Both the position numbers and the translations under genes were made by a program. Under the pieces are notes generated by a model. It was not told the origin of the DNA, made no database searches, and saw only the letters and a program-made list of their open reading frames with translations. A DNA stretch of 64,000 nucleotides from Macrostomum lignano (Eukaryota): NCBI GenBank assembly GCA_002269645.1, contig NIVC01001049.1:248001-312000 (forward strand). Direction: 5' to 3'. Each line of letters begins with the position of its first letter. The first letter of the stretch is position 1. Positions 18,758-50,562 of the stretch are shown in pieces.

Positions 18758-21149
18758 GCTTCTGTTGGTGAGGGCGACAATGGCCTGAGCGGATTCGGGA
18801 ACTGCGCACATGGCCGCCACAGGTGAGTTGCCTTGAGGCAGCTCCGCCTGTCCAGTGCTCAAGAGGTGCTCCAGCTCAGCATCAGTGTCGCACAGATACC
18901 CCTCCGGGCACCGGAGTCGCACGAGTCCATTCAGATTCTCCCAGCTGGCCAACAGAATGTCAGATGCCGGAGACACCAGACAGAAAATTGGACCCCAACT
19001 CGCAGGGGCCCGGACTCGACTCTGGAGACGCATTGAGTCGAGGTGCCACAGCACCGCGATTCCGTCCGCGCCTCCCGAAACAAAAATCTGCCGCCCGTCT
19101 AGAGAGCAGGCAGACGTGACTCGGCCAGCATGGCCCCGACTGAACACCAGCTCGGACAGCAGCTGTTTCGGCCTGCCCAGCATTCGGACAGGCGAGTCGG
19201 CAGCAATGGAGTTGCAAATTGGCTAAAAATGTGGAATGAGCTCAGTGACAGGACTTTCGTCTAAATGAATAAAGATGCAGATGAGTTAAAAAATCGCAAA
19301 GCAGCTCACATTCTGCAACTGCAGAGCTCCACCCAACGCATGCGGCCTGTGAAGGAACGATGCAGAGCTCACAGGCGATTCTACCGGATCTTGGCAGGGG
19401 TCTCGCGGCACGGAGGCCAGCTGTGCGTCGTGTCGGCTTCGGTCGCCCACAGGAGCGTCCATGGCCTGCCGTCGGCCACTGAAAACAGCTGACCAGCGAT
19501 GAAAGGAAATTTTTGAGTAGCAGTGCATAAAATTTGTCTCAATAATAGAATTCCTTAACCCTACACCATACTGACATACCAGAATTCGAATGAGATATCG
19601 CTGTCTGCTTCAGTTTCGAGTCCATGAGCTCAAGGTGAGAGTCCACGGTTTCCCTGTAGTGCCTCTCCAGACCGGACCTGCGCACCATCGCCCTGCAGCC
19701 CAGGTGAGAGTACTTGCACTCTACCGGTCTCTCGGGACACTCCGACAGGTGAGCAACATATCCCCGCCTGTCCATCGGTGTGCTCCGCTCCGAGCAGTGA
19801 GGACAGCGAGCTGAGAATCTCGGACAGCACACATCGGACTGCAGATTCCTGTGACTGGTCTCCATCTCGCTGTGTGTGACCAGCTGAGAGCACAGGTCGC
19901 AGGTCTCCTTCCTGTGGCGACACTCGCTGCTGGTGTGTCGCTGCATGTCCTTCTTCAGGATGAGCTCTTTGCACTGCTCACAGCGGAGTGAGTGCCAGTC
20001 GCAGCTCTGTTGCACATGCTGGTCCATGCGAGCCCATTCGAGTTGGACAGAGCAGCCGGCGTCGCAGTTCGGACAGCGGACTCGCAGCTTGGCGACCTCG
20101 CGTCTCGTCGCCATGTCGGGAAAGCAGGTAGCCTGGCTCACCTTGATCTCGACCCCGCCGCCAGCGTCCTCCTCCGAGTGGTGGTCTCTGAGTGTGCAGG
20201 CCTCGGTGTGTTCGGGACAGGGCCGCTTCTCCACCTCGTGCAGCAGGCCGGTGACGCAGGCCTGGCACAGGCGGCACCCATGCGGAGTCTGTCGGGCGTT
20301 GAAGAGCGGCTTGGAGCAGCTGCTGCACTGCAGGTGAGCCGGTAGATCGGAGACCGGCCTCGCTGCCGACACTCGCTGGGGAAGTTCCAACTGGTGCATG
20401 TCTGGGAGAGAGGGCTTAGTTTATTATAAACTGCTATGATATTGTCAGATTGCCTGAAAATCTGTTGGTTTATTTGCTTTTCTTCTTCAGTTGGAGTTTT
20501 CTGAAAGTTCAGATATAAAACTTTATGCTTGGGGGGTGGTGTCTTTTTGAAACCAAGTACTTTTCCTTTGTCAACTGAGATTGCGGCGTCACCTTCCATT
20601 AGCGGACACAAAACAACGTGTAGTACCGCATCGCTACATTTCTATCATATGGCAATAGAAAATCAAAACAACAAAGTCTATAGCGTCAGTTTCTCCCATG
20701 TAATAAGAATTTCTCCCCAGTCTCACAGTCACCATGAAGCTGCAGTAGAGAGCGCGGTAGCCTTTGTTCTAGATCACTAAGTATACAGTATTTAGGAGCG
20801 CGCCAGATTCAAGCTAAAATGCATTCCGCTTGGTGCACTGCATACAAAACTACCCTGGATTGTTATACGAGCTAAAAACTTTCCTGGATTGAGCCCTGTG
20901 CTATTTTTATCACGGCGTGTGATTTATTGTTAGAACCATCACACACTTGTCTTTGGGAAGTTCCGACTGAGACATGCGTCACTGAGAAGGGCCTAAATTT
21001 CTATAACAAAATAAATAAACCGCAGTGGTATTGTCTGATTGTCAAAAGCGTCGCAACGGTTGTTGGGCGACTGCGACTCGTTGCCTCTTCTGGCTGTCAT
21101 CCAGATGATGCGGCACCCATCGTGCAGTGACCCTCTGCAGCCCCAGGTC

Positions 21150-21450
21150 CTCTATGAGAATTCAGTGGATGCTGGATGAAGGAATTCCACTGAGTTCTGC
21201 CCTTTCTTCGCACATCCCATCGCGGATCGATTACTAGCAGACCACCGATGAGCTCGAGGTTGTTCTCGGTCCGCAATTCCCAAGTGTCTCCCGGATCTTT
21301 GCTCGTCCACGCTCGAAGTGCAGCCGCTCTTGAAGCGATCGCACCGCTTGCACACAGCGCTGGCACACTGCATCCCTGCCGTACGCGTCTACAAGCTGCC
21401 GGTGGACTTGTGCAGCTGGTGTTCCTTGCAACCATTCAATTTTTATGCAA
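21150..21450 (-). mobile_element. Degenerate mariner/Tc1 transposase N-terminal fragment
   Basis: QGTPAAQVHRQLVDAYGRDAV, then shifted frames CDRFKSGCTSSVDEQRSGR and TENNLELIGGLLVIDPR, follow the mariner HTH pattern. No TIRs identified. Confidence 0.6.
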
Positions 21451-21794
21451 CATCGCCTTGGCTTTATCCTTGGCTTCTACAGATCCATTTATTCAAACAG
21501 CAGTTTGATCTTGAATAATGGAAATAAATTTTAGACGATTTTAAAATTTTGTCTAATTCACACTGGTCCTGCTGATCCCTTGCGCCCTCCCCTCCTCCGC
21601 GCCGCGCTCCGCCGCATGCCGTGGGGTTTTTAACCTCTCCTATTTTCAGGCTTGGCCATGACGCTGCGTTCCTGCGCTGTTTGGAATTTTATCTAAACTT
21701 TTACAGCCTATCGAAAAAAATTTCTTTAGAAACTGGAGTCGGTTTGGGTGCCTGAACTTAAAGCAGAGAATTTAACGAACTTGAAAACTCTGAG

Positions 21795-22768
21795 AGGGCG
21801 TCAGCTACAGAAGAGGCGCCAGCTACAGAAGGGGCGCCAGCTACAGAGGGGCGCCAGCTACAGAGGGGCGCCAGCTACAGAAGGGGCGCCAGCTACAGAA
21901 GAGGCGCCAGCTACAGAAGAGGCGCCAGCTACAGAGGGGCGCCAGCTACAGAAGAGGCGCCAGATACAGAGTAGCGCCAGCTACAGAAGAGGCGCCATCT
22001 ACAGAGGGGCGCCAGCTACAGAGGGGCGCCAGCTACAGAGGGGCGCCAGCTACAGAAGGAGCGCCAGCTACAGAAGAGGCGCCAGATACAGAGGGGCGCC
22101 AGCTACAGAGGGGGCGCCAGCTACTGAAGGGGCGCCAGCTACAGAGGGGGCACCAGCTACAGAAGAGGCACCAGCTACAGAAGAGGCGCCAGCTACAGAA
22201 GAGGCGCCAGCTACAGAAGAGGCGCCAGATACAGAGGGGCGCCAGCTACAGAGGGGGCGCCAGCTACTGAAGGGGCGCCAGCTACAGAGGGGCGCCAGCT
22301 ACAGAAGGGGCGCCAGCTACAGAAGAGGCGCCAGCTACAGAAGAGGCGCCAGCTACAGAGGGGCGCCAGCTACAGAAGAGGCGCCAGATACAGAGTAGCG
22401 CCAGCTACAGAAGAGGCGCCATCTACAGAGGGGCGCCAGCTACAGAGGGGGCGCCAGCTACAGAAGAGGCGCCAGCTACAGAAGAGGCGCCAGCTACAGA
22501 AGGAGCGCCAGCTACTGAAGGGGCGCCAGCTACAGAGGGGGCGCCAGCTACAGAGGGGGCACCAGCTACAGAGGGGGCACCAGCTACAGAAGAGGCGCCA
22601 GCTACTGAAGGGGCGCCAGCTACAGAGGGGGCGCCAGCTACTGAAGGGGCGCCAGCTACAGAGGGGGCGCCAGCTACAGAAGAGGCGCCAGCTACAGAAG
22701 AGGCGCCAGCTACAGAAGGAGCGCCAGCTACAGAGGGAGCGCCAGCTACAGAGGGGGCGCCAGCTACA
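21795..22768. repeat. Minisatellite, 17-18-bp unit agctacaga(a/g)g(a/g)ggcgcc
   Basis: Direct tandem repeat; it explains the ORFs at 21748-22872. Confidence 0.96.
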
Positions 22769-24782
22769 GGGGGGTGTCTCCGCAGACTGGGATGTCTCTG
22801 ACCTGTTGTCAGCACTGCTGACATCGGGGCGTGCGGTGCAGAAAGAAAGAGAGAGAGTGAGAGCTGCTGCATCGGCCTAGAGACGTACGACTCTGATGAT
22901 AGTAGTATTCATATCATTTTAACGGTGTTTGCTTTCAAATCAAAATAGTCATTGACCATTTTGACGACTAATGCTCATGAATATTTTTAGCCCAGAATTC
23001 CATATACTAAAAATGAAAATGACAACTAAAATCTGTTCTATTTTTAGACAATTCACATATCTGCGCGATTTATATAAACAGACGCACATAGCACATCACG
23101 TGATTATTCTCTCTCACCCATTACGACTATTTAAGCCAGTTGTGGAAAGCGTAGAACTTACGTTTGACATTGAAAAGCTCGCTTGCTGTTTAAAAGAATC
23201 CTGCGGCTGTTTGAGTTGGCAGAAGATAGGCTTTTTTAAATTTGAGCATTTAAAACTACGATTATAATAAATCGTAGTTTAGAAACAAAGCAGTTTGTTA
23301 TTAAAGTCACAATAATCTTAATCAGGTAACTGACTAGAATTAGGCTATAAATTTTATCTATCAATTGCTCGCGAGTCTCATGTACGACGTACTTGCTTCA
23401 TTTTTGAGTAAAGAAATACACTGCAGTTTGGAAGTTTTCTTCAGTGAAACGGTGAAACTTGATTTCTTTGCTTAAATGAGCTTGGTTGGCTTTTTCATTG
23501 TTTTTGCGGCCAATAGTCTTATTACTCAATGTCTTTATTTTATATACTTTTTTATGTTTTATGCCGCGCAACTGCGGACTTTCGTGTCTTGGATTTAACT
23601 AGGTTAACTGGAACAAAAACGACTTTGTTAAAGAATTTAGAATTTTTATTAGGCAATTTATAATAGTCGTTGTCAATTGCCAGAACAGCAGAGGTCACAA
23701 CAGCCTTTAATTTGACCCTTCCGGCTCTCTTTTAGGCCTATCAGTTGCTTCTCAAATCCGACAGGTGAGCAAATCTTCCAGCATAAGCCTTCATCTCAAA
23801 GTTTTAATTAGTTGTAGCTACCCCTGATTTTGCAACTTCGAAACTGTTAGATTAAGATTATAGAAATAATTCCCACAAGACGCGTCAACATTTCGTATTG
23901 AGAACAAAAACGATTGTGTGACAAATGTTTTTAACGCCTTAAAAAGTAATTAAGTTTTTTTGTTCGATGAAGTCTGGTGAAAACGGTAAAAGTTTTATGA
24001 ATATTGGACATAATGGTAGATTGCGTAGTAGGTAAGGGACTGAAATAATGGCCAAACAAAGTCTATGGCACATAGAGGCCATTATTTCAGCATAGCGTAG
24101 TCTGACGGCCATTATTTCAGCGTGCCGGAAGCGGTCATTATTTCACACTTTTTATCACGCTTTAATTGGCTGTTTTGAGAGTTATTTTACCCATAGATGA
24201 CTGAGATGTGTGTCTTAGTTTGACCATAGACAACACTGTGATGAGTGCCGATTTCGTTTGCGTCTTGCAAGAAATCAGGAAAGTGGGTAGTACGAGTAAA
24301 AGCTATTTGTCTTGTCAAGCAACTATGGCTGGTGCATCTCGTCAAACAGCCCCGCTTATTAATTGGAATATCTTCTTGTCGATGACTGAACGAACCGTTT
24401 TTTCAGTGTATTCCAGAATTCCATGTAGACTGTTTGCGATTATTCTCATATGTCAGTTAATAAATGCATATTTAACTAATCGTTTATGGTTCAAACGCCT
24501 GCTAAAGCTGAAATAATGGCCAGTTGAGTTTGTCATTACACCAGGCTGTGCCTTATGGACAATGGCATGACACTAGTAACAGGCCAATTTTACCTAAACG
24601 AATCTCTAAAAATTTTTGTGCCAAAATGAGTCATGAGCAAGCTTCCGTGTTTTATGGACTCAGCACGCAGCTAAAAAGGAACATTGCAGCGTTTGATGAC
24701 AAAAACAGAGCCACACCCTTTCACAAAAACGCCTAAAGTTTTTAATAAAAGACTTCTCACTTTTCAGCAGGACACATGCGTC

Positions 24783-26022
24783 ATGTCAGAACTTCCAGAG
24801 CGAGTGTCGGGAGCCCGACCGGTCTCCGATCTGCCGGCTCACCTGCAGTGCAGCAGCTGCTCCAAGCCGCTCTTCAACGCCCGACAGACTCCGCACGGGT
24901 GCCGCCTGTGCCACGCCTGCGTCACTGGCCTGCTGCACGAGGTGGAGAAGCGGCCCTGTCCCGGACACACCGAGGCCTGCACACTCAGAGACCGCCACTC
25001 GGAGGAGGACGTTGGCGGCGGGGTCGAGACCGAGGTGAGCCGAGCTACCTGCTATCCCGACATAGCGACGAGACGCGAGGTCGCCAAGCTGCGAGTCCGC
25101 TGTCCGAACTGCGACGCCGGCTGCTCTGTCCAACTCGAATGGGCTCGCATGGACCAGCATGTGCAACAGAGCTGCGACTGGCACTCACTCCGCTGTGAGC
25201 AGTGCAAAGAGCTCATCCTGAAGAAGGACATGCAGCGACACACCAGCAGCGAGTGTCGCCACAGGAAGGAGACCTGCGACCTGTGCTCTCAGCTGGTCAC
25301 ACACAGCGAGATGGAGACCAGTCACAGGAATCTGCAGTCCGATGTGTGCTGTCCGAGATTCTCAGCTCGCTGTCCTCACTGCTCGGAGCGGAGCACACCG
25401 ATGGACAGGCGGGGATATGTTGCTCACCTGTCGGAGTGTCCCGAGAGAACGGTAGAATGCAAGTACTCTCACCTGGGCTGCGGGGAGATGGTAAGCAGGT
25501 CCGATCTGGAGAGGCACTACAGGGACAGCATGGACTCTCACCTTGAGCTCATGGACTCGAAGCTCAAGCAGGCAGCTGTTGTTCCATCGAATTCTGGTAA
25601 GCTTTTCTGTTGAATAATAGCAAAGATCAATGTGCGCTAATACATTAAGGTGGTTGGATGCGAATGTTTTGTTGGTCGCTATTGCAATAATGTTTAATTG
25701 TTCATTTCCAGCAGCTGCGGTCCCGCAGTCCTCTGTCGGTGCCGCAGCTCCCACCGCCACTACCGCCGACGGTCGCGAGGTGGCCGATGTGAAGCGGCGA
25801 GTCGGCAGCGTCTTCGAGCAGTTCAAGAAGCTGCAGGTCAACGTGGCGAACTGGGCTCACAGCACCATGGAGCTCGAGCAGCTGGCTGACAGGTTCGGAG
25901 GCGTCTCGCAGCTGCGGACTCTGCTGAGCGGACTGGACGAGCGGACAAGGAACGTCGAGCAGCTGCAGCAGCAGGTGCAGCAGCTCCAGCAGCAGGTGCA
26001 GCAGCTGCAACAGAGAGCTTGA
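24783..26022 (+). CDS. TRAF-like copy 2: RING + TRAF zinc fingers + coiled coil, no MATH domain (about 373 aa)
   Basis: Exons 24783-25596 and 25715-26022, phase 1. CSSC...QTPHGCRLCHAC; YPDIATRREVAKLRVRCPN..GC; repeated C-x2-C...H...C fingers; QQQVQQL heptads, then stop. Confidence 0.85.
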
Positions 26023-26409: not shown

Positions 26410-27424
26410 CTACTGAGGTCTCCAGTGTGCACTTGCCCACCTAAGTCTGCACTGAGGTCTCCAGTGTGCACTTGCCCACCTAAGTCTGCACTGAGGTCTC
26501 TCCAGTGTGTACTGCCCACCTAAGTCTGCACTGAAGCCTCTCCAGTGTGTACTGCCCACCTAAGTCTGCACTGAAGTATCTCCAGAGTGTACTGCCCACC
26601 AAAGTCTGCACTGAAGTCTCTCCAGTGTGCACTGCCCACCTAAGTCTGCACTGAAGTCTCTCCAGTGTGTACTGCCCACTTAAGTCTGCACTGAGGTCTC
26701 TCCAGTGTGTACTGCCCACCTAAGTCTGCACTGAGGTCTCTCCAGTGTGTACTGCCCACCTAAGTCTGCACTGACGTCTCTCCAGTGTGTACTGCCCACT
26801 TAAGTCTGCACTGAGGTCTCTCCAGTGTGCACTTGCCCACTTAAGTCTGCACTGAGGTCTCTCCAGTGTGTACTGCCCACCTAAGTCTGCACTGAAGCCT
26901 CTCCAGTGTGTACTGCCCACTTAAGTCTGCACTGAGGTCTCTCCAGTGTGTACTGCCCACCTAAGTCTGCACTGAGGTCTCTCCAGTGTGTACTGCCCAC
27001 CTAAGTCTGCACTGAAGTCTCTCCAGTGTGTACTGCCCACCAAAGTCTGCACTGAGGTCTCTCCAGTGTGTACTGCCCACCAAAGTCTGCACTGAAGTCT
27101 CTCCAGTGTGTACTGCCCACTTAAGTCTGCACTGAGGTCTCTCCAGTGTGTACTGCCCACCAAAGTCTGTACTGAGGTCTCTCCAGTGTGTACTGCCCAC
27201 CAAAGTCTGCACTGAAGTCTCTCCAGTGTGCACTTGCCCACCTAAGTCTGCACTGAAGTCTCTCCAGTGTGTACTGCCCACCTAAGTCTGCACTGAAGTC
27301 TCTCCAGTGTGTACTGCCCACCTAAGTCTGCACTGAAGTCTCTCCAGTGTGCACTGCCCACCTAAGTCTGCACTGAAGTCTCTCCAGTGTGCACTGCCCA
27401 CCTAAGTCTGCACTGAAGTCTCTT
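26410..27424. repeat. Minisatellite, 40-bp unit taagtctgcactgaggtctctccagtgtgtactgcccacc (about 25 copies, some 41 bp)
   Basis: Direct tandem repeats with no unique spacers. Confidence 0.96.
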
Positions 27425-28149: not shown

Positions 28150-28690
28150 CGAATACCTCCATGAGCATTGAGATCACAGCAATTTCCCACATGAACCTTG
28201 CTATTTCACCAATTCTCACTGACCCACAGAATTTCAGCGATTTCCCCATGAGCCTTGGCATCGCAGCAATTCCCCCCTGAGCCTTGGCATCTCAGCAATT
28301 CCCCCCTGAGCCTTGGCATCTCAGCAATTCCCCCCTGAGCCTTGGCATCTCAGCAATTCCCCCCTGAGCCTTGGCATCTCAGCAATTCTCCCCTGAGCCT
28401 TGGCATCGCAGCTATTCCCCCCTGAGCATTGGCATCTCAGCAATTCTCCCCTGAGCCTTGGCATCTCAGCAATTCCCCCCTGACCCTTGACATCTCAGCA
28501 ATTCCCCCACGATCCTTGACATCTCAGCAATTCCCCAAGAACCGGAAACCGGAAAATTTCTGATCGAACAGAACAAGTTTCATGAAAATCGGTTGAGCCG
28601 TTTTTTTCTGAAATTAATCGCATACCTACCTAGATACCTAGATACTCGTAGATAGAGAAAACTCATTTTAACATACCGGGTATGTTAAGG
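28150..28690 (+). mobile_element. Possible non-autonomous Helentron/DINE-like element
   Basis: Tandem array, then aagtttcatgaaaatcgg, a short cctagata microrepeat and a 21-bp palindrome ttaacatacc-g-ggtatgttaa (28668-28688). The 5' end is not defined. Confidence 0.4.
28250..28530. repeat. About 29-bp tandem array gagccttggcatctcagcaattccccct (about 10 copies)
   Basis: Direct tandem repeat. Confidence 0.92.
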
Positions 28691-29432: not shown

Positions 29433-30188
29433 ATGGTCAGAAGCTTCCAGAACACCCAGCAGTCCTGGTGGGTCCCAGTCGGTCGCATCTCCAGCCAGGC
29501 TGAGGCTCTGTCCCAGGCTCAGCTGTTTGAGGCCCGTCATCCGGGACTAAAGTACACTGGCAGCTGGAACTCCGCCCCGAACTCAAAGCACTGCTCCATC
29601 GAGGTCGCCTCCGCGGGGTCAATTGTTGTCTCTCTGGGCGCCACTTCCAGCCGCAGAGATGCGCAAGACAAGGCTGAAGCCTTCATCGCAAAGCATCTGT
29701 ACCTGAAGTGGACAGCCAGCTGTTCTGAGCTCGGTTGGCTCCAGAACTTCCAGATTGTGGTCGAAGCTTTCCTGCCCACCGAGTGGCACATGAAGGAAGG
29801 CACAGTTGGGGCCTGCCTGCCAGTGACCACCAGCCTGCGGCTGAGGAACTTGACCTCCGAGAAGGTGACCAGGATTTCTGCAAGGGGCTTGGAGCCCAAC
29901 GACTGGGGCCAGCGGCGGCCCTGCCTCCAGTTCTCCGACAGACAGATCGTCGAGCGAGGCGTCCTGGAGAAGGAGCTGGACGTGAACTTCTGGAGCCACA
30001 CGGCCAAGCTGGCGGTCTGGCTCGGCTTCCAGAGCGGCCGCTACCTGCAGTTCCAGGTGAACAGCCGGGTGGCCATCGACAGCTCGGCAAAAAATCATTG
30101 GAAATTCTCCTCTGGAGCTGGCCTGTCGGTTTACCACAAGGTGGAGCCCGGCGCCCGCCTGCTGGAGGTGGTCGTGTGCGACTCATGA
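29433..30188 (+). CDS. Two MVL-like (mannan-binding lectin) repeats + uncharacterised beta-rich C-terminal domain, paralog 1 (251 aa, intronless CDS)
   Basis: VPVGRISSQAEALSQ...ARHPGLKYTGSW...SIEV follows the MVL pattern IPAGPLWSNAEAQ...AAHQGNFTGQW...VVEV recalled from memory; second weaker repeat follows. A clear paralog at 34854 supports coding status. Confidence 0.62.
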   Translation: MVRSFQNTQQSWWVPVGRISSQAEALSQAQLFEARHPGLKYTGSWNSAPNSKHCSIEVASAGSIVVSLGATSSRRDAQDKAEAFIAKHLYLKWTASCSELGWLQNFQIVVEAFLPTEWHMKEGTVGACLPVTTSLRLRNLTSEKVTRISARGLEPNDWGQRRPCLQFSDRQIVERGVLEKELDVNFWSHTAKLAVWLGFQSGRYLQFQVNSRVAIDSSAKNHWKFSSGAGLSVYHKVEPGARLLEVVVCDS

Positions 30189-31971: not shown

Positions 31972-33188
31972 ATGTCGGAGCTGCCTTCGAGTGTGTCGGC
32001 TGCGAGGCCGGTCTCCGTTCTGCCGACTCACCTGCAGTGCAGCAGCTGCTCAAAGCCGCTCTTCAACGCCCGACAGACTCCGCACGGGTGCCGCCTGTGC
32101 CAGGCCTGCGTCACCGGCCTGCTGCACGAGGTGGAGAAGCGGCCCTGTCCCGGAAACACCGAGGCCTGCACACTCAGAGACCACCACTCGGAGGAGGACG
32201 CTGGCGGCGGGGTCGAGATCGAGGTGAGCCAGGCTACCTGCTTTCCCGACATGGCGACGAGACGCGAGGTCGCCAAGCTGCGAGTCCGCTGTCCGAACTG
32301 CGACGCCGGCTGCTCTGTCCAACTCGAATGGGCTCGCATGGACCAGCATGTGCAACAGAGCTGCGACTGGCACTCATTCCGCTGTGAGCAGTGCAAAGAG
32401 CTCATCCTGAAGAAGGACATGCAGCGACACACCAGCAGCGAGTGTCGCCACAGGAAGGAGACCTGCGACCTGTGCTCTCAGCTGGTCACACACAGCGAGA
32501 TGGAGACCAGTCACAGGAATCTGCAGTCCGATGTGTGCTGTCCGAGATTCTCAGCTCGCTGTCCTCACTGCTCGGAGCGGAGCACACCGATGGACAGGCG
32601 GGGATATGTTGCTCACCTGTCGGAGTGTCCCGAGAGACCGGTAGAGTGCAAGTACTCTCACCTGGGCTGCAGGGCGATGGTGCGCAGGTCCGATCTGGAG
32701 AGGCACTACAGGGAAAGCGTGGACTCTCACCTTGAGCTCATGGACTCGAAACTCAAGCAGACAGCGATAGCTCAGCAGAGTCCTTGTAAGAACTGGTGTC
32801 AAAATCAGTAATATAATCACGCAGAAGATGCTGTTCTGTGGTTTAATTTTTTTTCCTATTTTTAGCAGCCGCCGTGCCGCAGTCTTATGTAGGTTCCGCA
32901 GCTCCCGCCGCCGACGGTCGCGATGTGGCCGACGTGAAGCGGCGAGTCGGCAGCGTCTTCGAGCAGTTCAAGAAGCTGCAGGTCAACGTGGCGAACTGGG
33001 CTCACAGCACCATGGAGCTCGAGCAGCTGGCTGACAGGTTCGGAGGCGTCTCGCAGCTGCGGACTCTGCTGAGCGGACTGGACGAGCGGACGAGGAGCGT
33101 CGAGCAGCTGCAGCAGCAGGTGCAGCAGCTCCAGCAGCAGGTGCAGCAACTCCAGCAGCAGGTTCAGCAGGCGCAGAGCAGTCAATAG
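31972..33188 (+). CDS. TRAF-like copy 3, MATH-less
   Basis: Exons 31972-32785 and 32869-33188, phase 1; near-identical to copy 2. Confidence 0.85.
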
Positions 33189-34853: not shown

Positions 34854-35621
34854 ATGGTGCTCACCCTCCCAGTCCCGCCGGCCGTGCACTGGACGGTGCA
34901 GCTCGGCCCCGTCACCGACGCAGCGGACGCGAATTCAAAGGCGCTTGCCTACATGGCGGCGAACCCGGGCCTGAGGTGGCTGGGCTCCTGGAAGGCCATT
35001 CGGGACGGCAGGCTGACCGAGATTGAGGTCTCGTCTGAGGGGAGCATCGTGGTGTCCGTTGGAAGCACATCCGACAGTCGGGATGCGAAGAGCAAGACGG
35101 AGCTCTTCCTCAGAAAGAAGCCGTACCTAAAGTGGATCGGAGACTGCACAGCCGCTGGTTGGCACGAGAGCTTCGAGATCCTGGTGGAGCCGTATCTGCC
35201 CAGCCAGTGGCCTATGCAGGGGGGCACCGAGGGCTCGTGCCTGCCCGTGCAGATGCAGCTCAAGATAAAGAACGCGACGCCAGAGGCCGTTACTCGAGTT
35301 GTCGCGTGGGTCCTGGATGAAGAAGACTGGGGCGCCAGGTCGCCGTGCCGCCAGCTGACGGGGTGCAGAATCGAAGCCAGCCAGAGTCTGCAGAGGCAGC
35401 TGGACCTCAACTTCTGGCACTGGTCGGCCCAGTTCGGTCTGAGGCTAAAATTCCAGACTGGCCGGTGGCTTGAGTGCGAAGTCAACGGCAGAATTTCCAT
35501 AGACAGTGCCGCGGAAAAGAGCTGGAGCTGTAGGTCGGACCTCCCGGGTCTGTCCGCCTGCCCCCTGCCGCATCCGGACTCGCAGCTGCTGGAGCTGCTG
35601 GCAGTGCCTGAGTGCGTCTAA
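34854..35621 (+). CDS. MVL-like two-repeat protein, paralog 2 (255 aa, intronless CDS)
   Basis: VQLGPVTDAADANSK...AANPGLRWLGSW...EIEV. Colinear with 29433-30188 at roughly 40-45% identity by hand alignment (GSIVVS, YLKW, CLPV, DWGxRxPC, LDxNFW, FQxGR). Confidence 0.62.
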   Translation: MVLTLPVPPAVHWTVQLGPVTDAADANSKALAYMAANPGLRWLGSWKAIRDGRLTEIEVSSEGSIVVSVGSTSDSRDAKSKTELFLRKKPYLKWIGDCTAAGWHESFEILVEPYLPSQWPMQGGTEGSCLPVQMQLKIKNATPEAVTRVVAWVLDEEDWGARSPCRQLTGCRIEASQSLQRQLDLNFWHWSAQFGLRLKFQTGRWLECEVNGRISIDSAAEKSWSCRSDLPGLSACPLPHPDSQLLELLAVPECV

Positions 35622-37274: not shown

Positions 37275-38501
37275 ATGTCCGAGCTGCCTTCAAGTGTGTC
37301 GGCAGCGAGGCCGGTCTCTGATCTGCCGGCTCACCTGCAGTGCAGCAGCTGCTCCAAGCCGCTCTTCAACGCCCGACAGACTCCGCACGGGTGCCGCCTG
37401 TGCCACGCCTGCGTCACCGGCCTGCTGCACGAGGTGGAGAAGCGGCCCTGTCCCGGACACACCGAGGCCTGCACACTCAGAGACCACCACTCGGAGGAGG
37501 ACGTCGGCGGCGGCGGCAGCGGCGGCGAGGTCGATATCGAGGTGAGCCAGGCTACCTGCTTTCCCGACATGGCGACGAGACGCGAGGTCGCCAAGCTGCG
37601 AGTCCGCTGTCCGAACTGCGACGCCGGCTGCTCTGTCCAACTCGAATGGGCTCGCATGGACCAGCATGTGCAACAGAGCTGCAACTGGCACTCACTCCGC
37701 TGTGAGCAGTGCAAAGAGCTCATCCTGAAGAAGGACATGCAGCGACACACCAGCAGCGAGTGTCGCCACAGGAAGGAGACCTGCGACCTGTGCTCTCAGC
37801 TGGTCACACACAGCGAGATGGAGACCAGTCACAGGAATCTGCAGTCCGATGTGTGCTGTCCATTGTTCTTAGCCTACTGCCCTCACTGTAGCTACAGAAG
37901 CAGGAAGATGGACAGGCGGGGATATGTTGCTCACCTGTCGGAGTGTCCCGAGAGACCGGTAGAGTGCAAGTACTCTCACCTGGGCTGCAGGGCGATGGTG
38001 CGCAGGTCCGACCTGGAGAGGCACTACAAGGAGAGCGTGGACTCTCATCTTGAGCTCATGGACTCGAAACTGAAGCAGGCAGCGATAGCTCAACAGAGTC
38101 CTGGTAAGAAATATAGTCGAAATCAGTAAAATGATCATCCAGGAGAAGCTGCCAGTATCAGATGCTTTCATTCTTGATAAAATATAATTTTCTCTTTTAT
38201 AACAGCTGCTGCCCCGCAGTCCTTCGTCGGTCCCACAGCGTCCACCGATGCTCATGAAGTCATCAACGTGAAGCGACGAGTCGGCAGCGTCTTCGAGCAG
38301 TTCAAGAAGCTGCAGGTCAACGTGGCGAACTGGGCTCACAGCACCATGGAGCTCGAGCAGCTGGCTGACAGGTTCGGAGGCGTCTCGCAGCTGCGGACTC
38401 TGCTGAGCGGACTGGACGAGCGGACGAGGAGCGTCGAGCAGCTGCAGCAGCAGGTGCAGCAGCTCCAGCAGCAGGTGCAGCAGCTACAGGAAAGGATTTA
38501 A
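37275..38501 (+). CDS. TRAF-like copy 4, MATH-less
   Basis: Exons 37275-38103 and 38206-38501, phase 1. Extended Gly linker and a divergent patch at 37861-37908. Confidence 0.85.
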
Positions 38502-39029: not shown

Positions 39030-40724
39030 TTACGCCACTGTTTTTGACACTTGCGTCACAGTCAGTGGTAGCGAACCCACGGAGGAGCAAGTCGCCTTCC
39101 GCCGGGAGCTCGCCAGCCTGTACAACAGGTCGACCAGCTCGGCGATGATCGCGATTGACAGCCCGCACCAGATGCCGCAGATGCTGCCCACCTGGCACAG
39201 GAAGACAGCCGGAGTGGTGATTGGAGTCTGGCGAAAGCTCTGCAGCATGAAGGGGTTTCTGCTTAGCTCGGCCATGAAGGGCCGTGGTCGAGAGACGTTG
39301 GAGCAAAGCTTCTCTGCTGAACTCTTCGAGCTGGCGTTGGTCAGCAGGGCGGCTTCGACATCCGAGATCCCGGCGCCCTGGTAGTTGACCTCGTAGATGG
39401 CCTGCTCCATCACGCAGCGCTGGAGATCATTCATGGGGACGTAGCTGGCACCCGAGACCGTGGCCGGGAACCAGAACTCTCGGCAGGAGCTCTCGCAGTT
39501 TTCATCGTAGACCTGAGACGAGCTCAGGACGTCGTCAACGCAGAAGTCCCTTTTGGAGAAAGCTTCAACTGAGTCGTCTGGTGTGAAAGCGTTGCATCGC
39601 ATCGTGCGGTCCGTCAGGTTCAACAGGCCGATGTCGAGAGTGCAGTTGCATCGCCGATGCACTTCTTTGCGAATCGCCTGCACTATGCACATCTCTTTTG
39701 TGTACTTAAAGTGCCGGTGCCGCACCGTTCCGTTGTCTACGCGGTACTCTGTCGACCATCCAGACAGGCTGTTGCACTTCAGCCTTTGCAGCCTACTCTG
39801 AGTGAACTTCACCTGGTTGTAGTAGTTGCTTGGCAGTAGCAGTCTGTTGTGGGTAAAGGGCACCTCTAACTCGCTGTGCAGGTCGAAAACAAAGCCATTG
39901 GTGGAAGTGAGACCGTCGATGGGGAATCCAGTTGAAAAATGATTGTCAGTGGACGAGTTGGTGGCGTTTGCTGCGACCGGAGCGGTCGGAATCACCAGAA
40001 CAATTGACTGGGTGAGCTTGGACATTGCGGCTGGCAAAGTCACTGTGTAGCAGCTTAGGTAGTCTGGATGGTGGAATGGCACGAGAGTGTAATCGCTGGG
40101 CACCAGCCAGATCACTCTTCCTGTCACCTGCAGCATGCGAATGATGGGCGCCCCGATGCTTGCTCCCAGACTGGAGACTTCGTGCAAACTTCTATTGGCC
40201 CGCGACAGGGTTCCCAGCACAGTGGCTATGTAGTTTCTGAAGCTCTCGATGAGCAGCAGGAAGCCTCTGTCAGCGCTTGGATGCTTCAGATAGAACTTCT
40301 GCACGCGATTGCGAACGTGGCTAGAAAATTCGGCCGGAGTGAGGACTCGGCCGGCCGACAGGTAACTGAGGGCGCTTTGACTCAAGCGCGTCCCGTCGCA
40401 GTAGGACACGCTGGGGAATGGCTGGTTCGCGCTGGAAGCAAAGTGCAGATCAACAACCAGGTCGCCCTTGACAAAGTTCAGAGTCAGCAGCGTCAGGTGG
40501 CAGGTCATGCCCACAAAGCAGGCCAGCACAAAGCAGGTCCAGAACGCGCGCAGCAGGGCGCTGTCTGAATGAACCGTCCGACGTAGCGATCGAATGGACG
40601 ATTCGGCAGCGAACTGGGTCAGGTACGAGGATATCGGTGAGGCGTGCTGCATTGAGGAGCGTGCGGTTGCACTTGCGGAGCCCAGCCTTTTTCTCTTAGA
40701 CAATCTACCCTGTCTTGAATCCAT
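39030..40724 (-). CDS. DEG/ENaC (amiloride-sensitive sodium channel family) subunit, intronless, 564 aa
   Basis: RAFWTCFVL (TM1), FPSVSYC, Cys-rich ectodomain (CIVQ...CNC...C...C..SC), FLCQVGSICGIWCGLSIAIIAELV (TM2 with GxS). Confidence 0.85.
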   Translation of the reverse strand: MDSRQGRLSKRKRLGSASATARSSMQHASPISSYLTQFAAESSIRSLRRTVHSDSALLRAFWTCFVLACFVGMTCHLTLLTLNFVKGDLVVDLHFASSANQPFPSVSYCDGTRLSQSALSYLSAGRVLTPAEFSSHVRNRVQKFYLKHPSADRGFLLLIESFRNYIATVLGTLSRANRSLHEVSSLGASIGAPIIRMLQVTGRVIWLVPSDYTLVPFHHPDYLSCYTVTLPAAMSKLTQSIVLVIPTAPVAANATNSSTDNHFSTGFPIDGLTSTNGFVFDLHSELEVPFTHNRLLLPSNYYNQVKFTQSRLQRLKCNSLSGWSTEYRVDNGTVRHRHFKYTKEMCIVQAIRKEVHRRCNCTLDIGLLNLTDRTMRCNAFTPDDSVEAFSKRDFCVDDVLSSSQVYDENCESSCREFWFPATVSGASYVPMNDLQRCVMEQAIYEVNYQGAGISDVEAALLTNASSKSSAEKLCSNVSRPRPFMAELSRNPFMLQSFRQTPITTPAVFLCQVGSICGIWCGLSIAIIAELVDLLYRLASSRRKATCSSVGSLPLTVTQVSKTVA

Positions 40725-42660: not shown

Positions 42661-43056
42661 ACACAACTATCAGTCAGGCGGAACCAGCTCTGAGATAAGT
42701 TCATTTTCAACCACTAGCTTTTCCACGTTGCAAAAGAGATCTATTTTACTTTTTACTTGAAGGGGCTACGGAGTAAGAGAACCACAAAACATGTAAGCTA
42801 TTGTACAAAGGCGACGTACCTAATTACAAAAGTCAAAGACATCCATTAGTGTAGGAGCGCTAACGGGGAACTACCCAATAAATCATGAAGTCGGTACAAC
42901 CGAGTAAAGAGAATCTAATATACTAAAATAGTTTGTCTGTCCATATATCCACCTAAAGATAGCGGGTACCACCGCATAACTAAATGCAAGCAAACCGTTT
43001 TAAGCTTGACACTCAAAACGAAAAATAGTTGGATCAGCATCGCACAAAAAATTCAA

Positions 43057-44251
43057 ATGGCCTTTGAGCTGCCCCAGCGAGTGTCGGGAGCCCGGCCGGT
43101 CTCCGCTGTACCGGCCCATCTGCAGTGCAGCAGCTGCTCCAAGCCGCTCTTCAACGCCCGACAGACTCCGCACGGGTGCCGCCTGTGCCACGCCTGCGTC
43201 ACCGGCCTGCTGCACGAGGTGGAGAAGCGGCCCTGTCCCGGACACACCGAGGCCTGCACACTCAGAGACCACCACTCGGAGGAGGACGGCGGCGGCGAGG
43301 TCGAGATCGAGGTGAGCCAGGCTACCTGCTTTCCCGACATGGCGACGAGACGCGAGGTCGCCAAGCTGCGAGTCCGCTGTCCGAACTGCGACGCCGGCTG
43401 CTCTGTCCAACTCGAATGGGCTCGCATGGACCAGCATGTGCAACAGAGCTGCGACTGGCACTCACTCCGCTGTGAGCAGTGCAAAGAGCTCATCCTGAAG
43501 AAGGACATGCAGCGACACACCAGCAGCGAGTGTCGCCACAGGAAGGAGACCTGCGACCTGTGCTCTCAGCTGGTCACACACAGCGAGATGGAGACCAGTC
43601 ACAGGAATCTGCAGTCCGATGTGTGCTGTCCGAGATTCTCAGCTCGCTGTCCTCACTGCTCGGAGCGGAGCACACCGATGGACAGGCGGGGATATGTTGC
43701 TCACCTGTCGGAGTGTCCAGAGAGACCGGAAGAGTGCAAGTACTCTCACCTGGGCTGCAGGACGATGGTGCGGAGGTCCGATCTGGAGAGGCACTACAGG
43801 GAGAGCATGGACTCTCACCTTGAGCTCATGGACTCGAAACTCAAGCAGGCAGCGATAGCTCAGCAGAGTCCTGGTGAGATTTGCTTTCGAAGTGATGCGT
43901 CATGCAGAGGCTGCCATATTGAGATTTGGAATCACATTTGACAATTTTACAATCATTCATTCGCCAGCCGCCGCAGCTACCACCGGCACCGCCGACGGTG
44001 GCGAGGTGGCCGACGTGAAGCGGCGAGTCGGCAGCGTCTTCGAGCAGTTCAAGAAGCTGCAGGTCAACGTGGCGAACTGGGCTCACAGCACCATGGAGCT
44101 CGAGCAGCTGGCTGACAGGTTCGGAGGCGTCTCGCAGCTGCGGACTCTGCTGAGCGGACTGGACGAGCGGACAAGGAGCGTCGAGCAGCTGCAGCAGCAG
44201 GTGCAGCAGCTCCAGCAGCAGGTGCAGCAGCTGCAACAACCAAGGGCATGA
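43057..44251 (+). CDS. TRAF-like copy 5, MATH-less
   Basis: Exons 43057-43873 and 43968-44251, phase 1. The stop lies at the junction with the inverted fragment. Confidence 0.82.
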
Positions 44252-44258
44252 GCCTGGC

Positions 44259-44668
44259 CAGGTAGCCTGGCTCACCTCGACCTCGCCGCCGCTGCCACCG
44301 CCGCCAGCGTCCTCCTCCGAGTGGTGGTCTCTGAGTGTGCAGGCCTCGGTGTGTCCGGGACAGGGCCGCTTCTCCACCTCGTGCAGCAGGCCGGTGACGC
44401 AGGCGTGGCACAGGCGGCACCCGTGCGGAGTCTGTCGGGCGTTGAAGAGCGGCTTGGAGCAGCTGCTGCACTGCAGATGGGCCGGTACAGCGGAGACCGG
44501 CCGGGCTCCCGACACTCGCTGGGGCAGCTCAAAGGCCATTTGAATTTTTTGGTGCGATGCTGATCCAACTAGCTTTCGTTTTGAGCGTCGAGTTTAAATT
44601 GTTTTGCTTAGGTATGCGGTGGTACCCGCTATCTTTAGGTGGATATTAGATTCTCTTACTCGGCTGTA
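44259..44668 (-). pseudogene. TRAF-like copy 6: inverted 5' fragment (upstream region + RING only)
   Basis: ATG at 44539 (MAFELPQRVSGARP...). Homology stops at 44259; upstream sequence resembles 42893-43056. Confidence 0.85.
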
Positions 44669-46034: not shown

Positions 46035-46060
46035 TGCTCTTTAATCTATAGCACGGGCAC
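45177..46060. mobile_element. Non-autonomous Harbinger-family element (MITE) with internal 7-bp ctcctga array
   Basis: Degenerate TIRs gggcctttgctgtaga / tctatagcacgggcac resemble the 6806-10035 TIR. CAG TSD at 45174-45176 and 46061-46063; actcct/ggagt motifs as in the Harbinger subterminal regions. Array at about 45775-46035. Confidence 0.75.
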
Positions 46061-46678: not shown

Positions 46679-47190
46679 AGTTAGGGGGCGCCAGTTTCTT
46701 ATAGAGGGGGGGGCGCCAGTTTCTTATAGAGGGGGGGGCGCCAGTTTCTTTTAGGGGGGGCGCCAGTTTCTTTTAGAGGGGGGCGCCAGTTTCTTATAGA
46801 GAGGGGGGCGCCAGTTTCTTTTAGGGGGGCCAGTTTCTTATAGGGGGGGCGCCAGTTTCTTTTAGGGGGGCGCCAGTTTCTTTTAGAGGGGGGCGCCAGT
46901 TTCTTTATAGGGGGGGGTGCCAGTTTCTTTTGGGGGGGCGCCAGTTTCTTTTAGGGGGGGGCGCCAGTTTCTTTTAGAGGGGGGGCGCCAGTTTCTTTAT
47001 AGGGGGGGCGCCAGTTTCTTATAGGGGGGGGGTGCCAGTTTCTTTTGGGGGGGCGCCAGTTTCTTTTAGAGGGGGGGGCGCCAGTTTCTTTTAGGGGGGG
47101 GGGGCGCCAGTTTCTTATAGGGGGGGGGGCGCCAGTTTCTTTTAGGGGGGGGGCGCCAGTTTCTTTTAGGGGGGGGCAGTTTTTATAGAG
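46679..47190. repeat. G-run minisatellite (g)nGCGCCAGTTTCTT(A/T)TA(GA), about 21-24 bp
   Basis: Direct tandem repeat with variable G-runs, preceded by caggggcgtagccagg. Confidence 0.93.
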
Positions 47191-47929
47191 GGGAGCAGTT
47201 TATTTAGTTTATTTTAGCAGTACAAGAAACAGTTAAAAATGTTTTGAGCACCTGCGCATGTACATGTAAAAGACCTGCCAGAAAAACCCAACCCCAGAGG
47301 CTGACTACGGAACTGTGAATTCGCCTGACTTTCGCAAGACGCAAACAGAATCATTGACGGTTGAGTTCGCGTCGGACCACAGCTGGCTTGGGGCATGTTA
47401 TACCATTTGCGCCTAATGAGAGCCAATCTCAGCGCACTTTGATCGGACTGAAAGTTGATTCTGCTAGATCCTCAGGCTGAGCAGCCACCCTCTCAGATCC
47501 TCAGGCTGAGCAGCCTCCCTCTCAGATCCTCAGGCTGAGACACACCTGTTGTGCTGAAGGCTGAATAGGCCGCGCTGTACAGTAGACCCTATGTGCGGGA
47601 GTGCATTATGAATTCTGGCCGCCATCCCGCACAAAAAGCTAATTATAGTCGGTTGGCCGTACGCGGGCAGACTTTCAAAAAATACTGGCCATACAAAAAC
47701 TGGCTTTCCAAGCAGTAAACAGTGAAAATCCAGCTGGTACAAGAGCTGCTCCAATCCGGTTGGGTCAACTTCTAGCCAAACCAGAAAACCCACAGCTGCC
47801 AATTTGCTGTCACATATCTAGAAATTTTTGACGTGAGAACAAACTGTCCTATTGGCTAGAAACACTGGGTCATTTTACAGAATCGAAGCTTCGAATTGTC
47901 GAAGACAGAAGCTGCATGTTACAATTAAA

Positions 47930-48208
47930 TAATCACAATAGTAATTAATAACTGATTACGGTACACCTGTCCCAATGAGCAGATGTGCTACCGACAGCTC
48001 AGCCGCAGCTGCGTACGGCTGTTCAGCCCAAGGACCCACCCTCAATTTCCCCAGCTAATGCTGGCACCCATTCTACAGTTGGGTAATCTGAAGCAATAGC
48101 GAGTTGAGTGCCTTGCTCAAAGCGACACAAATTGTTTCGAGTGAGTCGAGAATCGAACCCCCGACCTTTCAGTCGTGAGTCCGACGCTCTAACCACTAGG
48201 CTACAACT
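47930..48208 (-). mobile_element. tRNA-derived CORE-SINE
   Basis: Minus strand: head gttgtagcctagtggttagagcg...ggttcgattc, then tgtgtcgctttgagcaaggcactcaactc...cttcag...ctgtagaatggg, which aligns by eye with the CORE/MIR core TGTGTGACCTTGGGCAAGTCACTTAACCTC...CCTCAG...CTGTAAAATGGG. AT-rich tail. Confidence 0.78.
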
Positions 48209-49350
48209 GTAAAGTGCATGCTGTACTTTTCAGTCTCGGAACTGAACAATTCCATAACTGAAGTTAAAACAGCAAGTCTTCAAGCCTGAGAAACGACCTC
48301 AAAACAAAGCCTGCTCGATGAGTAGAGCCGATTAAGGCAACTCAACAGGTCAAATAGTTGACCAAAGAGTACCAAGGAACCAAAGCATTTATCAAGTAAA
48401 AGCGTTCCACTTTTTCAACTAGCAGCTGCTTGGTAGGTTGGCAATCCAGTAAAGTTCAGACGAAATTGCAGCTGTTCCTATCTATCTTAGTTGCAATGCC
48501 GAAATCCGGGAGGCGAGGTATTGGGAATTTAGCGCCAAACAGTGCCTGTGGTGACCAGGTCCCGAACTTTTCGAGTAGAGTTTGTATAGCTCGTACCACG
48601 CCGAAAGTTAAGGCGTCGAAAAGTGGCTGGAAGCGTATTATCCAATTATCCAAAAGCGGCTACCATGGACCGAAATTTGGAAACTTCGAGTCCCTCATCG
48701 TCGGCTTGAGCTGTATGGAATGATTTTACCAAAGCACACCCGGCATTATCTGACCAAACGGTCGCTACATGCTGGAAGCTTTCAATTCTGGAACTCCCTA
48801 ACAATTCTGCAGAATACAGCTGGCACAGAGGCTGCAACCGGCTGGACCAGTCCTTGCAAACTGGCCTTCTAAACTAGAATAACATTGCAGCAATCGCATG
48901 CGCCATACTGTACAATGCAAGGTACGACTTTGCTCAACCCACACAACGCCATCCAATTCTGTAAAAAATTCTTGAAACAGAAACAAGACAAAGGAAAGCG
49001 AGTCAATTTGTTTAAACAGAATACAGCTGCTGACTTGAAAGTGTCAGAGCCGCTTCAGACAGGTGCAGTGCTGGCACGTATTATTTTGGCTGAAGGCTGA
49101 AGGACTGTCGGAACAGAGATTCCAATACAGACTGAACTGAATTCCAGCAACATCCGCATTTCAATGGATTGTCTTGACTGGAGTTATTGCAGTTTGAATT
49201 GAATTCGGCTTGGTTAAAAATTGAAGTTGAACAGGAGCACCAGAGAGCACAGACAGGAAATGCACAGACAAAAATGCAAACAGTTGACAGCAATAGCACC
49301 AGTATCTGCTTGAATTGAAAAGCTGCAAGCAGACAAATATTGGAACGATT

Positions 49351-50562
49351 TTAGGGCCGCTGCTGTTGCACCTGTTGTTGGAGCTGCTGCACCTGCTGCT
49401 GGAGCTGCTGCACCTGTTGCTGCAGCTGCTCGACGCTCCTCGTCCGCTCGTCCAGTCCGCTCAGCAGAGTCCGCAGCTGCGAGACGCCTCCGAACCTGTC
49501 AGCCAGCTGCTCGAGCTCCATGGTGCTGTGAGCCCAGTTCGCCACGTTGACCTGCAGCTTCTTGAACTGCTCGAAGACGCTGCCGACTCGCCGCTTCACA
49601 TCGGCCACCTCGCGACCGTCGGCAGCTGTGGGGGCGGAATGTGCGGCACCGACAGAGGACTGCGGGACCGCGGCTGCTGAAAAATGAATAAAAATGTAAA
49701 ATGTGATTCAAAATCTGAATATGGCAGCCTCTGCATGACGCATCACTTTGAAAACAAATCTCACCAGGACTCTGCTGAGCTATCGCTGTGTGCTTGAGTT
49801 TCGAGTCCATGAGCTCAAGGTGAGAGTCCACGCTCTCCCTGTAGTGCCTCTCCAGATCGGACCTGCGCACCATCGCCCTGCAGCCCAGGTGAGAGTACTT
49901 GCACTCTACCGGTCTCTCGGGACACTCCGACAGGTGAGCAACATATCCCCGCCTGTCCATCGGTGTGCTCCGCTCCGAGCAGTGAGGACAGCGAGCTGAG
50001 AATCTCGGACAGCACACATCAGACTGCAGATTTCTGTGACTGGTCTCCATCTCGCTGTGTGTGACCAGCTGAGAGCACAGGTCGCAGGTCTCCTTCCTGT
50101 GGCGACACTCGCTGCTGGTGTGTCGCTGCATGTCCTTCTTCAGGATGAGCTCTTTGCACTGCTCACAGCGGAATGAGTGCCAGTCGCAGCTCTGTTGCAC
50201 ATGCTGGTCCATGCGAGCCCATTCGAGTTGGACAGAGCAGCCGGCGTCGCAGTTCGGACAGCGGACTCGCAGCTTGGCGACCTCGCGTCTCGTCGCCATG
50301 TCGGGAAAGCAGGTAGCCTGGCTCACCTCGATCTCGACCCATCGTCCCCCTCGCCTCTGAGTGTGCAGGCCTCGGTGTGTCCGGGACAGGGCCGCTTCTC
50401 CACCTCGTGCAGCAGGCCGGTGACGCAGGCCTGGCACAGGCGGCACCCGTGCGGAGTCTGTCGGGCGTTGAAGAGCGGCTTGGAGCAGCTGCTGCACTGC
50501 AGGTGAGCCGGCAGATCGGAGACCGGCCGGGCTGCCGACACACTTGAAGGCAGCTCGGACAT
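49351..50562 (-). pseudogene. TRAF-like copy 7, frameshifted in the Gly linker
   Basis: Exons 50562-49765 and 49673-49351. A deletion/frameshift at about 50335-50355 gives TGA at 50323; the rest is intact in the next frame. Confidence 0.82.

Follow-up and report, generated by a model that had tools for sequence, protein, structure and literature searches.

TRAF proteins are adaptors at the centre of innate immune and stress signalling. Canonical members, of the TRAF6/TRAF2 type, carry a RING-like motif, TRAF-type zinc fingers and a helical segment ahead of the TRAF-C/MATH domain. TRAF7 has a RING, a TRAF zinc finger and a coiled coil without MATH, and seven WD40 repeats stand in the place of this domain. 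TRAFD1/FLN29 and XAF1 are also MATH-less; they have TRAF-type zinc fingers and are reported modulators of TRAF-dependent innate pathways. A large TRAF/MATH expansion is known from the planarian Schmidtea mediterranea, in which about 99-121 MATH domains or transcripts were counted via the MATH domain (Swapna et al. 2018, PMC6109357). Here we describe a TRAF-derived array of seven copies (c1 to c7) over 31 kb of contig NIVC01001049.1 of the flatworm Macrostomum lignano, within an analysed stretch of 64 kb (the window; all positions count from its first letter). Four copies, c2-c5, are intact. The array is a real lineage-specific tandem gene family in M. lignano, and its members are TRAF paralogues by descent but not TRAFs by the defining TRAF domain. 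Their proteins may modulate TRAF signalling without engaging receptors.

A tandem array of MATH-less TRAF paralogues

Exon-1 and exon-2 copies were located by a tblastn search of the window with copy 3, which gave the following gene models:

c1, exon 1 20399-19580, minus strand: exon 1 intact, with RING-like motif and TRAF zinc fingers (tblastn match 20387-19560)
c2, 24783-25596 and 25712-26022, plus strand: intact, 374 aa (exon-1 tblastn match 24783-25610)
c3, 31972-32785 and 32866-33188, plus strand: intact, 378 aa, intron 32786-32865 (exon-1 tblastn match 31972-32808)
c4, 37275-38103 and 38206-38501, plus strand: intact, 374 aa (exon-1 tblastn match 37275-38126)
c5, 43057-43873 and 43968-44251, plus strand: intact, 366 aa (exon-1 tblastn match 43066-43872)
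c6, 44306-44539, minus strand: inverted 5' fragment, codons 1-77 (tblastn match 44530-44306, residues 3-77 only)
c7, 50562-49363, minus strand: pseudogene (exon-1 tblastn match 50562-49766, split over two frames)

An earlier reading made from the letters alone (hereafter the sequence-only reading) had placed the starts of seven such genes, and all seven start coordinates proved correct in the tblastn search. Its picture of a mixed cluster was borne out by the gene models, which include intact, truncated, rearranged and frameshifted members. It had also taken copies 2-5 and 7 to encode the full protein, which holds for c2-c5 but not for c7, in which a frameshift caused by deletions in the acidic/Gly linker produces a stop after 79 codons. 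The c7 intron, 90% identical to the c5 intron, and the c7 coiled-coil exon (49676-49363) are still recognisable as remnants.

Each of the copies c2-c5 consists of two exons separated by one GT-AG intron in phase 1. The second exon, which encodes the coiled coil, was found at five places in the window, 3' of c2, c3, c4, c5 and c7; a tblastn search of the window with copy-3 exon 2 detected no such exon after exon 1 of c1. The donor of c1 (GTATGT) is retained, and splicing to the next usable acceptor (about 19481) would give about 31 more codons before a stop. The c6 fragment adjoins the 3' end of c5 and carries about 110 nt of 5' flank in addition to its codons, forming an inverted repeat (42945-43328 / 44646-44259). 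DNA similarity between copies is limited to about 1.2 kb, starting shortly 5' of the ATG and ending at the stop. An acceptor-like site is located 2-15 nt 5' of the ATG of each TRAF copy, right where the similarity between paralogues starts; by their position, these candidate sites fit spliced-leader trans-splicing or an intron in the 5' untranslated region.

No MATH domain was detected by Pfam in the open reading frames (ORFs) of the array, and a tblastn search of the whole 64 kb on both strands, with the MATH part of the nearest M. lignano paralogue as query, gave zero matches at E ≤ 10. Furthermore, Pfam identified no family of any kind in the sense-strand ORF fragments (45 aa or longer) that lie downstream of c2, c3, c5 and c7. 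The sequence-only reading had proposed a local TRAF-like family in which every member lacks MATH, and these three scans all agree with it; the domain search that it suggested found TRAF zinc fingers and not MATH.

The copy-3 protein matched only M. lignano proteins, with 49-96% identity, among them hits of 77-96%; the database entries are titled 'hypothetical protein' or 'TRAF-type domain-containing protein'. A locus retrieved for one of these proteins (L002, NIVC01001049.1, assembly GCA_002269645.1) and window 60565-33841 are 100% identical over 26.7 kb, which places the window in the Mlig_3_7 assembly. Among paralogues with a MATH domain, P0005 and P0006 (Mlig010453 / Mlig002242) are the nearest, sharing 49-51% identity across 92% of the query; Pfam assigns MATH_2 / TRAF-mep_MATH to them. 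The gene of P0006 is intronless and lies on another contig. Homology with P0006 ends where P0006 enters the last part of TRAF-N and the MATH domain, and in the alignment this last TRAF-N part, directly before MATH in P0006, is missing from the array copies. The array family derives from a canonical TRAF gene that lost its C-terminal TRAF-C/MATH part. In a separate sequencing run, an exon-1 homologue with 62% identity (L004, Logan SRR24204725, 1184 bp) has its donor at the identical position and in the identical phase, so relatives with a like exon structure exist outside this assembly.

Other versions of the cluster

A collinear, rearranged cluster with 90-99% identity is present on NIVC01000672.1 (L001) in the same assembly, and a third collinear version, also with rearrangements, is present on NIVC01002933.1 (L007). 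Assembly duplication was considered as the origin of the array and rejected, because each copy has its own introns and flanks and because both of these contigs carry the array in collinear order. The view of the sequence-only reading that the copies are not assembly duplicates is thus confirmed. The counterparts of c2-c5 are intact on the second contig.

Two complete convergent copies occur at L001 21351-25100 and L007 9737-13288, where the window (42945-44646) has c5 and the c6 fragment instead. For this reason, c5 looks like a hybrid of two convergent copies, and the c5/c6 layout looks like the outcome of recombination between inverted copies followed by deletion, or possibly of assembly collapse. 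One of the two convergent copies in L001 (22377-22691) and in L007 is of a second MATH-less type, the coiled-coil exon of which is only about 50% identical to that of the array copies and still ends with the QQ-heptad repeat and a stop. The shared ending places the truncated architecture before this divergence, and the architecture is therefore old and maintained.

Purifying selection and exon-restricted gene conversion

Exons are 92-98% identical between paralogues, whereas introns (38-62%) are unalignable, apart from the c5/c7 pair mentioned above, and flanks are unalignable as well. Between positional counterparts on NIVC01000672.1, however, introns are 96-100% identical, showing that the paralogues are old and that their introns are not merely fast-evolving. 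Recent duplication was rejected as the source of the exon similarity on the same grounds. In a 330-nt zinc-finger core, 0 synonymous differences were found among c2, c3 and c5, against an expectation of about 10-12 (P ≤ 5e-5). In addition, c4 is a mosaic in which a 45-nt patch (CCPLFLAYCPHCSYRSRK) is closer to the MATH-bearing paralogue. Similar exons, unalignable introns, a core free of silent differences and the c4 patch together indicate that the exons are homogenised by gene conversion confined to exons.

The synonymous divergence (dS) between paralogues is 0.10-0.19. The ratio of nonsynonymous to synonymous divergence (dN/dS) is 0.28-0.38 for each of the six pairings of intact copies (Fisher p = 1e-3 to 2e-6); comparison with the positional counterparts on the second contig gives 0.28-0.45. 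Values of about 0.3 indicate that the intact copies are under purifying selection. The 'fast turnover' proposed by the sequence-only reading fits the c5/c6 rearrangement but covers only half of the evidence, as the paralogues are old and stay alike through gene conversion and purifying selection.

Protein architecture

The intact copies share one layout: a RING-like Cys/His motif, about four TRAF-type zinc fingers, a helical segment, a heptad tail and a stop. Pfam detected the TRAF-type zinc finger PF02176 in exon 1 above the curated cut-off (E = 6e-11 to 7e-13), in two stretches per protein. A phmmer search of the PDB aligned residues 22-183 with the RING-zinc finger fragment of TRAF6 (3hcs; E = 1.3e-9). 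All sequence matches in the PDB were RING-zinc finger fragments of TRAF6, TRAF5 and TRAF2, with the TRAF6 structures as the best. The structure of the family was modelled with AlphaFold on P0003, an annotated model that is chimeric for three copies. In this model, the zinc-finger region has a predicted local distance difference test score (pLDDT) of 73-92, and two long C-terminal helices are predicted at residues 290-329 and 333-369.

The RING-like region aligns with the TRAF6 RING within the 3hcs match, and the RING stretch alone has an independent E-value of about 1-2. All seven copies show the canonically spaced pattern C-x2-C-x10-H-x-C-x2-C-x2-C-x12-C-x2-H, the eighth ligand being Asn in c3 and His elsewhere. 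Pfam detected no RING at E < 0.01 in the array ORFs. In the alignment with 3hcs, the motif reads CSSCS where TRAF6 contacts the ubiquitin-conjugating enzyme (E2) with CPICL. TRAF2, which is not known to bind Ubc13, reads CSAC at these positions. The TRAF2-like CSSC thus argues against a ubiquitin ligase (E3) activity of the Ubc13 type.

The helical segment is 55-61% identical to the canonical MATH-bearing paralogue, compared with about 51% for exon 1, and holds a stretch that is near-identical to this paralogue (FKKLQVNVANWAH.T.E.EQ.AD.FGG.SQ). Every coiled-coil exon is closed by 2.5-3.3 units of a 21-bp repeat with the stop directly after it. The repeat encodes perfect (VQQLQQQ)n heptads, with V at position a and L at position d. 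Tandem-repeat analysis placed it as follows in two of the copies:

25958-26013, plus strand: 21-bp heptad repeat of c2
33103-33170, plus strand: 21-bp heptad repeat of c3

Transcript models and an internal donor

The transcript-based NCBI models P0003, P0004, P0114 and P0115 continue across exon 2 and terminate at the stop that follows the heptad repeat. As annotated, the transcripts are chimeric for several paralogues; P0003 merges three copies, and its gene range is 12.7 kb. These models establish that the family is transcribed, but they do not identify an individual copy. P0008, annotated as a 'protein', consists of the c6 fragment continued through antisense sequence of the c5 coiled-coil exon.

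UniProt also has five models based on the older ML2 assembly (P0001, P0002, P0116, P0117 and P0118), and these leave exon 2 at an internal donor after ...FKKLQ (CAG/GTCAAC), which may reflect either genuine alternative splicing or an artefact of annotation. Tracing of the UniProt models placed this donor at two positions:

25824/25825, plus strand: internal donor after FKKLQ in c2
32986/32987, plus strand: internal donor after FKKLQ in c3

In the models that can be traced, the donor is joined to an acceptor at 26146 (IEM and stop), at 33352 (LKPKVLQSGGADLML and stop) or at 34851. The sequence-only reading had named splicing from exon 2 into a downstream MATH exon as the finding that would speak against it. 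No MATH exon was found, but one model does join a downstream gene, which is lectin/aegerolysin-like and is described below.

Interleaved lectin/aegerolysin-like genes

Two further genes, X_c2 and X_c3, are interleaved with the TRAF copies:

X_c2, 29433-30188, plus strand: single exon, 251 aa, unannotated; two degenerate MVL-lectin-like repeats and a β-sandwich
X_c3, 34854-35621, plus strand: single exon, 255 aa, unannotated; two degenerate MVL-lectin-like repeats and a β-sandwich

The two proteins are 43% identical. They appear to be encoded by separate genes inside the array, on the strand shared with c2-c5. On the second contig both are intact (dN/dS 0.17 and 0.25), so they are functional genes. 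Their sole public trace is the tail of a chimeric UniProt model, A0A1I8GMY3 (P0001). An exact look-up of X_c3 returned no record in the public gene calls, and a word-index protein search with X_c3 was empty, although that search missed even P0001 with its 97 X residues.

No Pfam match was obtained for X_c2 or X_c3, including aegerolysin, actinoporin and PF12151. A full HMMER scan with X found three metagenomic proteins of 440-492 aa, aligned over the entire length with 24-32% identity, and the homologues from phmmer and profile searches include many proteins made of repeats of the MVL mannan-binding lectin (PF12151), with which the N-terminal half of X aligns. The AlphaFold model of X_c3 (pLDDT 83.5, predicted template modelling score 0.73) has two β-α-β-β units followed by a β-sandwich. 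In a Foldseek search of the PDB with this model, 13 of the 14 top matches were aegerolysin-type or related proteins or actinoporins (probability 1.0 each, E 5e-4 to 2e-2). They include RahU, Cry34Ab1 and IP-1A as well as the actinoporins FraC, equinatoxin II, sticholysin II and Fav, and the C-terminal β-sandwich of X_c3 superposes on aegerolysins and actinoporins with target-length-normalised template modelling scores of 0.44-0.66. The likeness to RahU, Cry34Ab1, FraC and equinatoxin II is one of fold, to a predicted model. We also considered X as a cryptic MATH domain and rejected this, because the top 50 Foldseek matches contain no MATH domain and contain aegerolysins and actinoporins instead.

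MVL repeats carry the sugar-binding motif GPxW(N/S)Q, whereas X reads GPVTDA / GSTSDS at these positions. Glycan binding by X is therefore doubtful. X has no N-terminus resembling a signal peptide, and the C-terminal helical extension of the metagenomic relatives P0009-P0011 is absent for X in the window. We found no described protein that pairs MVL-type repeats with an aegerolysin-like module. The presence of the X genes suggests a defence-type neighbourhood, by association only, and X_c2 and X_c3 are new candidate flatworm defence effectors.

Function of the MATH-less proteins

We propose, with a probability of about 0.5, that the MATH-less proteins are receptor-uncoupled, dosage-dependent modulators of TRAF signalling. 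They would form oligomers by means of the heptad tail and the conserved helical segment, and would be unable to dock on receptors. They could then enter mixed assemblies with a canonical, MATH-bearing TRAF, or both could compete for one partner; either would uncouple the zinc-finger/RING output from receptor engagement. The result would be a dosage-dependent modulation of TRAF signalling, most likely a damping of the receptor-driven signal, with the copy number setting the dose. We favour an oligomerising modulator because no other part of the proteins is as well conserved relative to the canonical paralogue as the helical segment and because the heptad tail is an oligomerisation motif.

Several points weigh against this proposal. 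Every functional step in it is inferred, and three of the seven copies are defective. The annotated transcripts are the chimeras described above, and the internal donor removes most of the coiled coil in the older-assembly models. Classical dominant-negative TRAFs were made by deleting the RING and not MATH, and forced oligomers of the N-terminal part of TRAFs activate signalling, so the effect could instead be an activating one. The dominant-negative action and the immune-type role suggested by the sequence-only reading are hypotheses. The RING-like motif is also atypical, since ligands 3 and 4 are swapped (PHGC in place of PCGH), and residues 1-102, which comprise the RING-like region, are not confidently folded in the AlphaFold model of P0003 (pLDDT 28-43). 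The RING named by the sequence-only reading is therefore retained as an eight-ligand pattern, but not as a domain that Pfam recognises or that folds with confidence, and its E3 activity is doubtful.

The array proteins might instead be receptor-independent activators or E3 ligases recruited by another partner, which would be constitutive or targeted through the zinc fingers or helix and regulated transcriptionally. This is unlikely on balance, but it has evidence in its favour: all eight RING zinc-ligand positions are retained in all copies, the zinc fingers are the most strongly conserved part, the heptad tail is predicted to supply oligomerisation, and forced oligomerisation of the N-terminal domain of TRAF2 or TRAF6 suffices for JNK/IKK activation. 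However, Ser occupies the E2-contact positions of TRAF6, as it does in TRAF2, and neither the Pfam result nor the AlphaFold confidence supports the RING. We regard it as improbable that the array is non-functional debris, i.e., a partial 5' TRAF duplicate amplified by unequal crossing-over in a repeat-rich polyploid genome, in which the copies would be transcribed noise or decaying pseudogenes, with their similarity due to gene conversion only. The truncated, fragmentary or frameshifted state of c1, c6 and c7 would agree with such an origin, as would the rearrangements that distinguish the three assembled versions of the cluster, the nonsense read-through annotated as P0008 and the abundance of retroelements and tandem repeats in the region. 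However, gene conversion alone would give a dN/dS of about 1, whereas about 0.3 was obtained in every comparison of intact pairs and counterparts. Furthermore, four ORFs keep their splice sites and phase intact in the window and have intact counterparts on the second contig, and the second MATH-less type, despite its divergent coiled-coil exon, has the same ending of heptads and stop.

A different possibility concerns the architecture itself. If c3 were co-transcribed with X_c3, as a fusion or operon, the FKKLQ donor could be cis-spliced to an acceptor 3 nt before the X_c3 ATG, and the product would be a TRAF in which a lectin-like and aegerolysin-like module replaces MATH; the MATH-less ORF would then be just one isoform. 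P0001 holds this exact junction (...FKKLQ/DMVLTLPVPP...), which is GT-AG, in phase 0 on both sides and in frame, with the acceptor CCCAG/GAC at 34850/34851. The other four UniProt models, from different paralogues, use the same donor with good acceptors at 26146 and 33352, and a three-codon terminal exon such as that found among them is unlikely to be invented by an ab initio predictor. However, P0001 is a patchwork of two TRAF copies with odd splices and breaks off inside X, and the donor GTCAAC deviates from the consensus of the species, GT[G/A]AG (PMC8629364). X_c2 has no in-frame acceptor, and X_c2, X_c3 and the distant homologues P0010-P0012 all begin with Met at one aligned position, as stand-alone proteins would. 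An X gene lies downstream of only two of the seven TRAF copies, across intergenic gaps of 1.7 and 3.4 kb, which exceed the 1-kb operon threshold applied to this species, and the transcript-based NCBI models run through to the exon-2 stop. We therefore consider such a fusion rather unlikely. Most economically, X would be a separate gene, the acceptor of which (possibly a spliced-leader acceptor) is occasionally cis-spliced to a weak upstream donor if the two are co-transcribed. A more inclusive version, in which the array and the X genes form one functional unit and at least one TRAF copy is expressed as a MATH-replaced chimera through co-transcription and alternative cis-splicing, is less probable still than any alternative above. 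If true, such a chimera would be a cytosolic TRAF that senses glycans or lipids, e.g., of damaged membranes or microbes, directly and without receptor docking, and the MATH-less isoforms would tune its assembly. Confirmation of the chimera or of an immune role would increase the interest of the locus.

Neighbouring genes and mobile elements

A full-length Gypsy-type long terminal repeat (LTR) retrotransposon is located at 14125-18757, with a 1322-aa gag-pol ORF (14453-18421). Its 358-bp LTRs are 100% identical, indicating a very recent insertion. The element splits a WD40-like ORF (18731-19183, minus strand / 13724-14170, minus strand) just downstream of c1. Between c4 and c5, a single-exon ORF of 564 aa (39030-40724, minus strand) belongs to the ASC/DEG-ENaC, or amiloride-sensitive sodium channel, family (Pfam E = 1.6e-29); it was not among the gene calls returned for the contig.

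Tandem arrays lie between the copies at 21796-22769, 26419-27423, 28152-28536 and 46684-47193 (18 bp x 55, 40 bp x 25, 29/87 bp and 25/47 bp). They occupy much of the space between copies and yield long spurious ORFs on both strands. The left flank contains ORFs with an ALK/LTK-type glycine-rich domain (2267-3239, plus strand), and the right flank contains a P5CS-like gene with amino-acid-kinase and aldehyde-dehydrogenase parts (54066-60565, minus strand). Further retroelement fragments were found at 4712-6742, 10021-11946 and 60686-63709, and a Harbinger-like transposase ORF at 8477-9217.

Comparison with known systems

A literature search found no published description of the MATH-less subfamily or of the X genes. 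Nevertheless, the 'undescribed system' of the sequence-only reading is overstated, as the array is a truncated subfamily of a known, expansion-prone family. The locus is a clean case of exon-restricted gene conversion and of a coiled-coil tail born from a minisatellite. The family is also a natural test of the RING/zinc-finger/coiled-coil half of TRAFs uncoupled from receptors. M. lignano is amenable to RNA interference and transgenesis, and the near-identical 330-nt core of the full-length copies would let one double-stranded RNA silence the family.

Among the MATH-less relatives, TRAFD1/FLN29 and XAF1 differ from the array proteins in that they lack both a RING-like motif and a TRAF-like helical segment, are single-copy and are not recent derivatives of canonical TRAFs. 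TRAF7 has its WD40 repeats after the coiled coil, where the array copies have nothing. A TRAF7-like fusion of c1 with the WD40-like ORF at 18731-19183 (minus strand; weak Pfam match, E = 2e-4) was considered and rejected, because this ORF starts with an ATG of its own, does not share the frame of the c1 donor and is split by the retroelement.

The closest likeness is to the canonical TRAFs, of the TRAF6/TRAF2 type and including P0005 and P0006, which have the RING-like motif, the TRAF zinc fingers and the first helical segment in common with the array copies. Unlike them, the array copies lack TRAF-C/MATH and the last part of TRAF-N and have the heptad tail of the 21-bp repeat and a stop instead. 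In contrast to intronless P0006, they contain one intron, are arranged in tandem and evolve in concert. Like the planarian TRAF expansion, the array is lineage-specific in a free-living flatworm; unlike that expansion, which is defined by MATH, it consists of MATH-less members and would therefore be invisible to MATH-based counts, which thus miss part of the flatworm TRAF repertoire.

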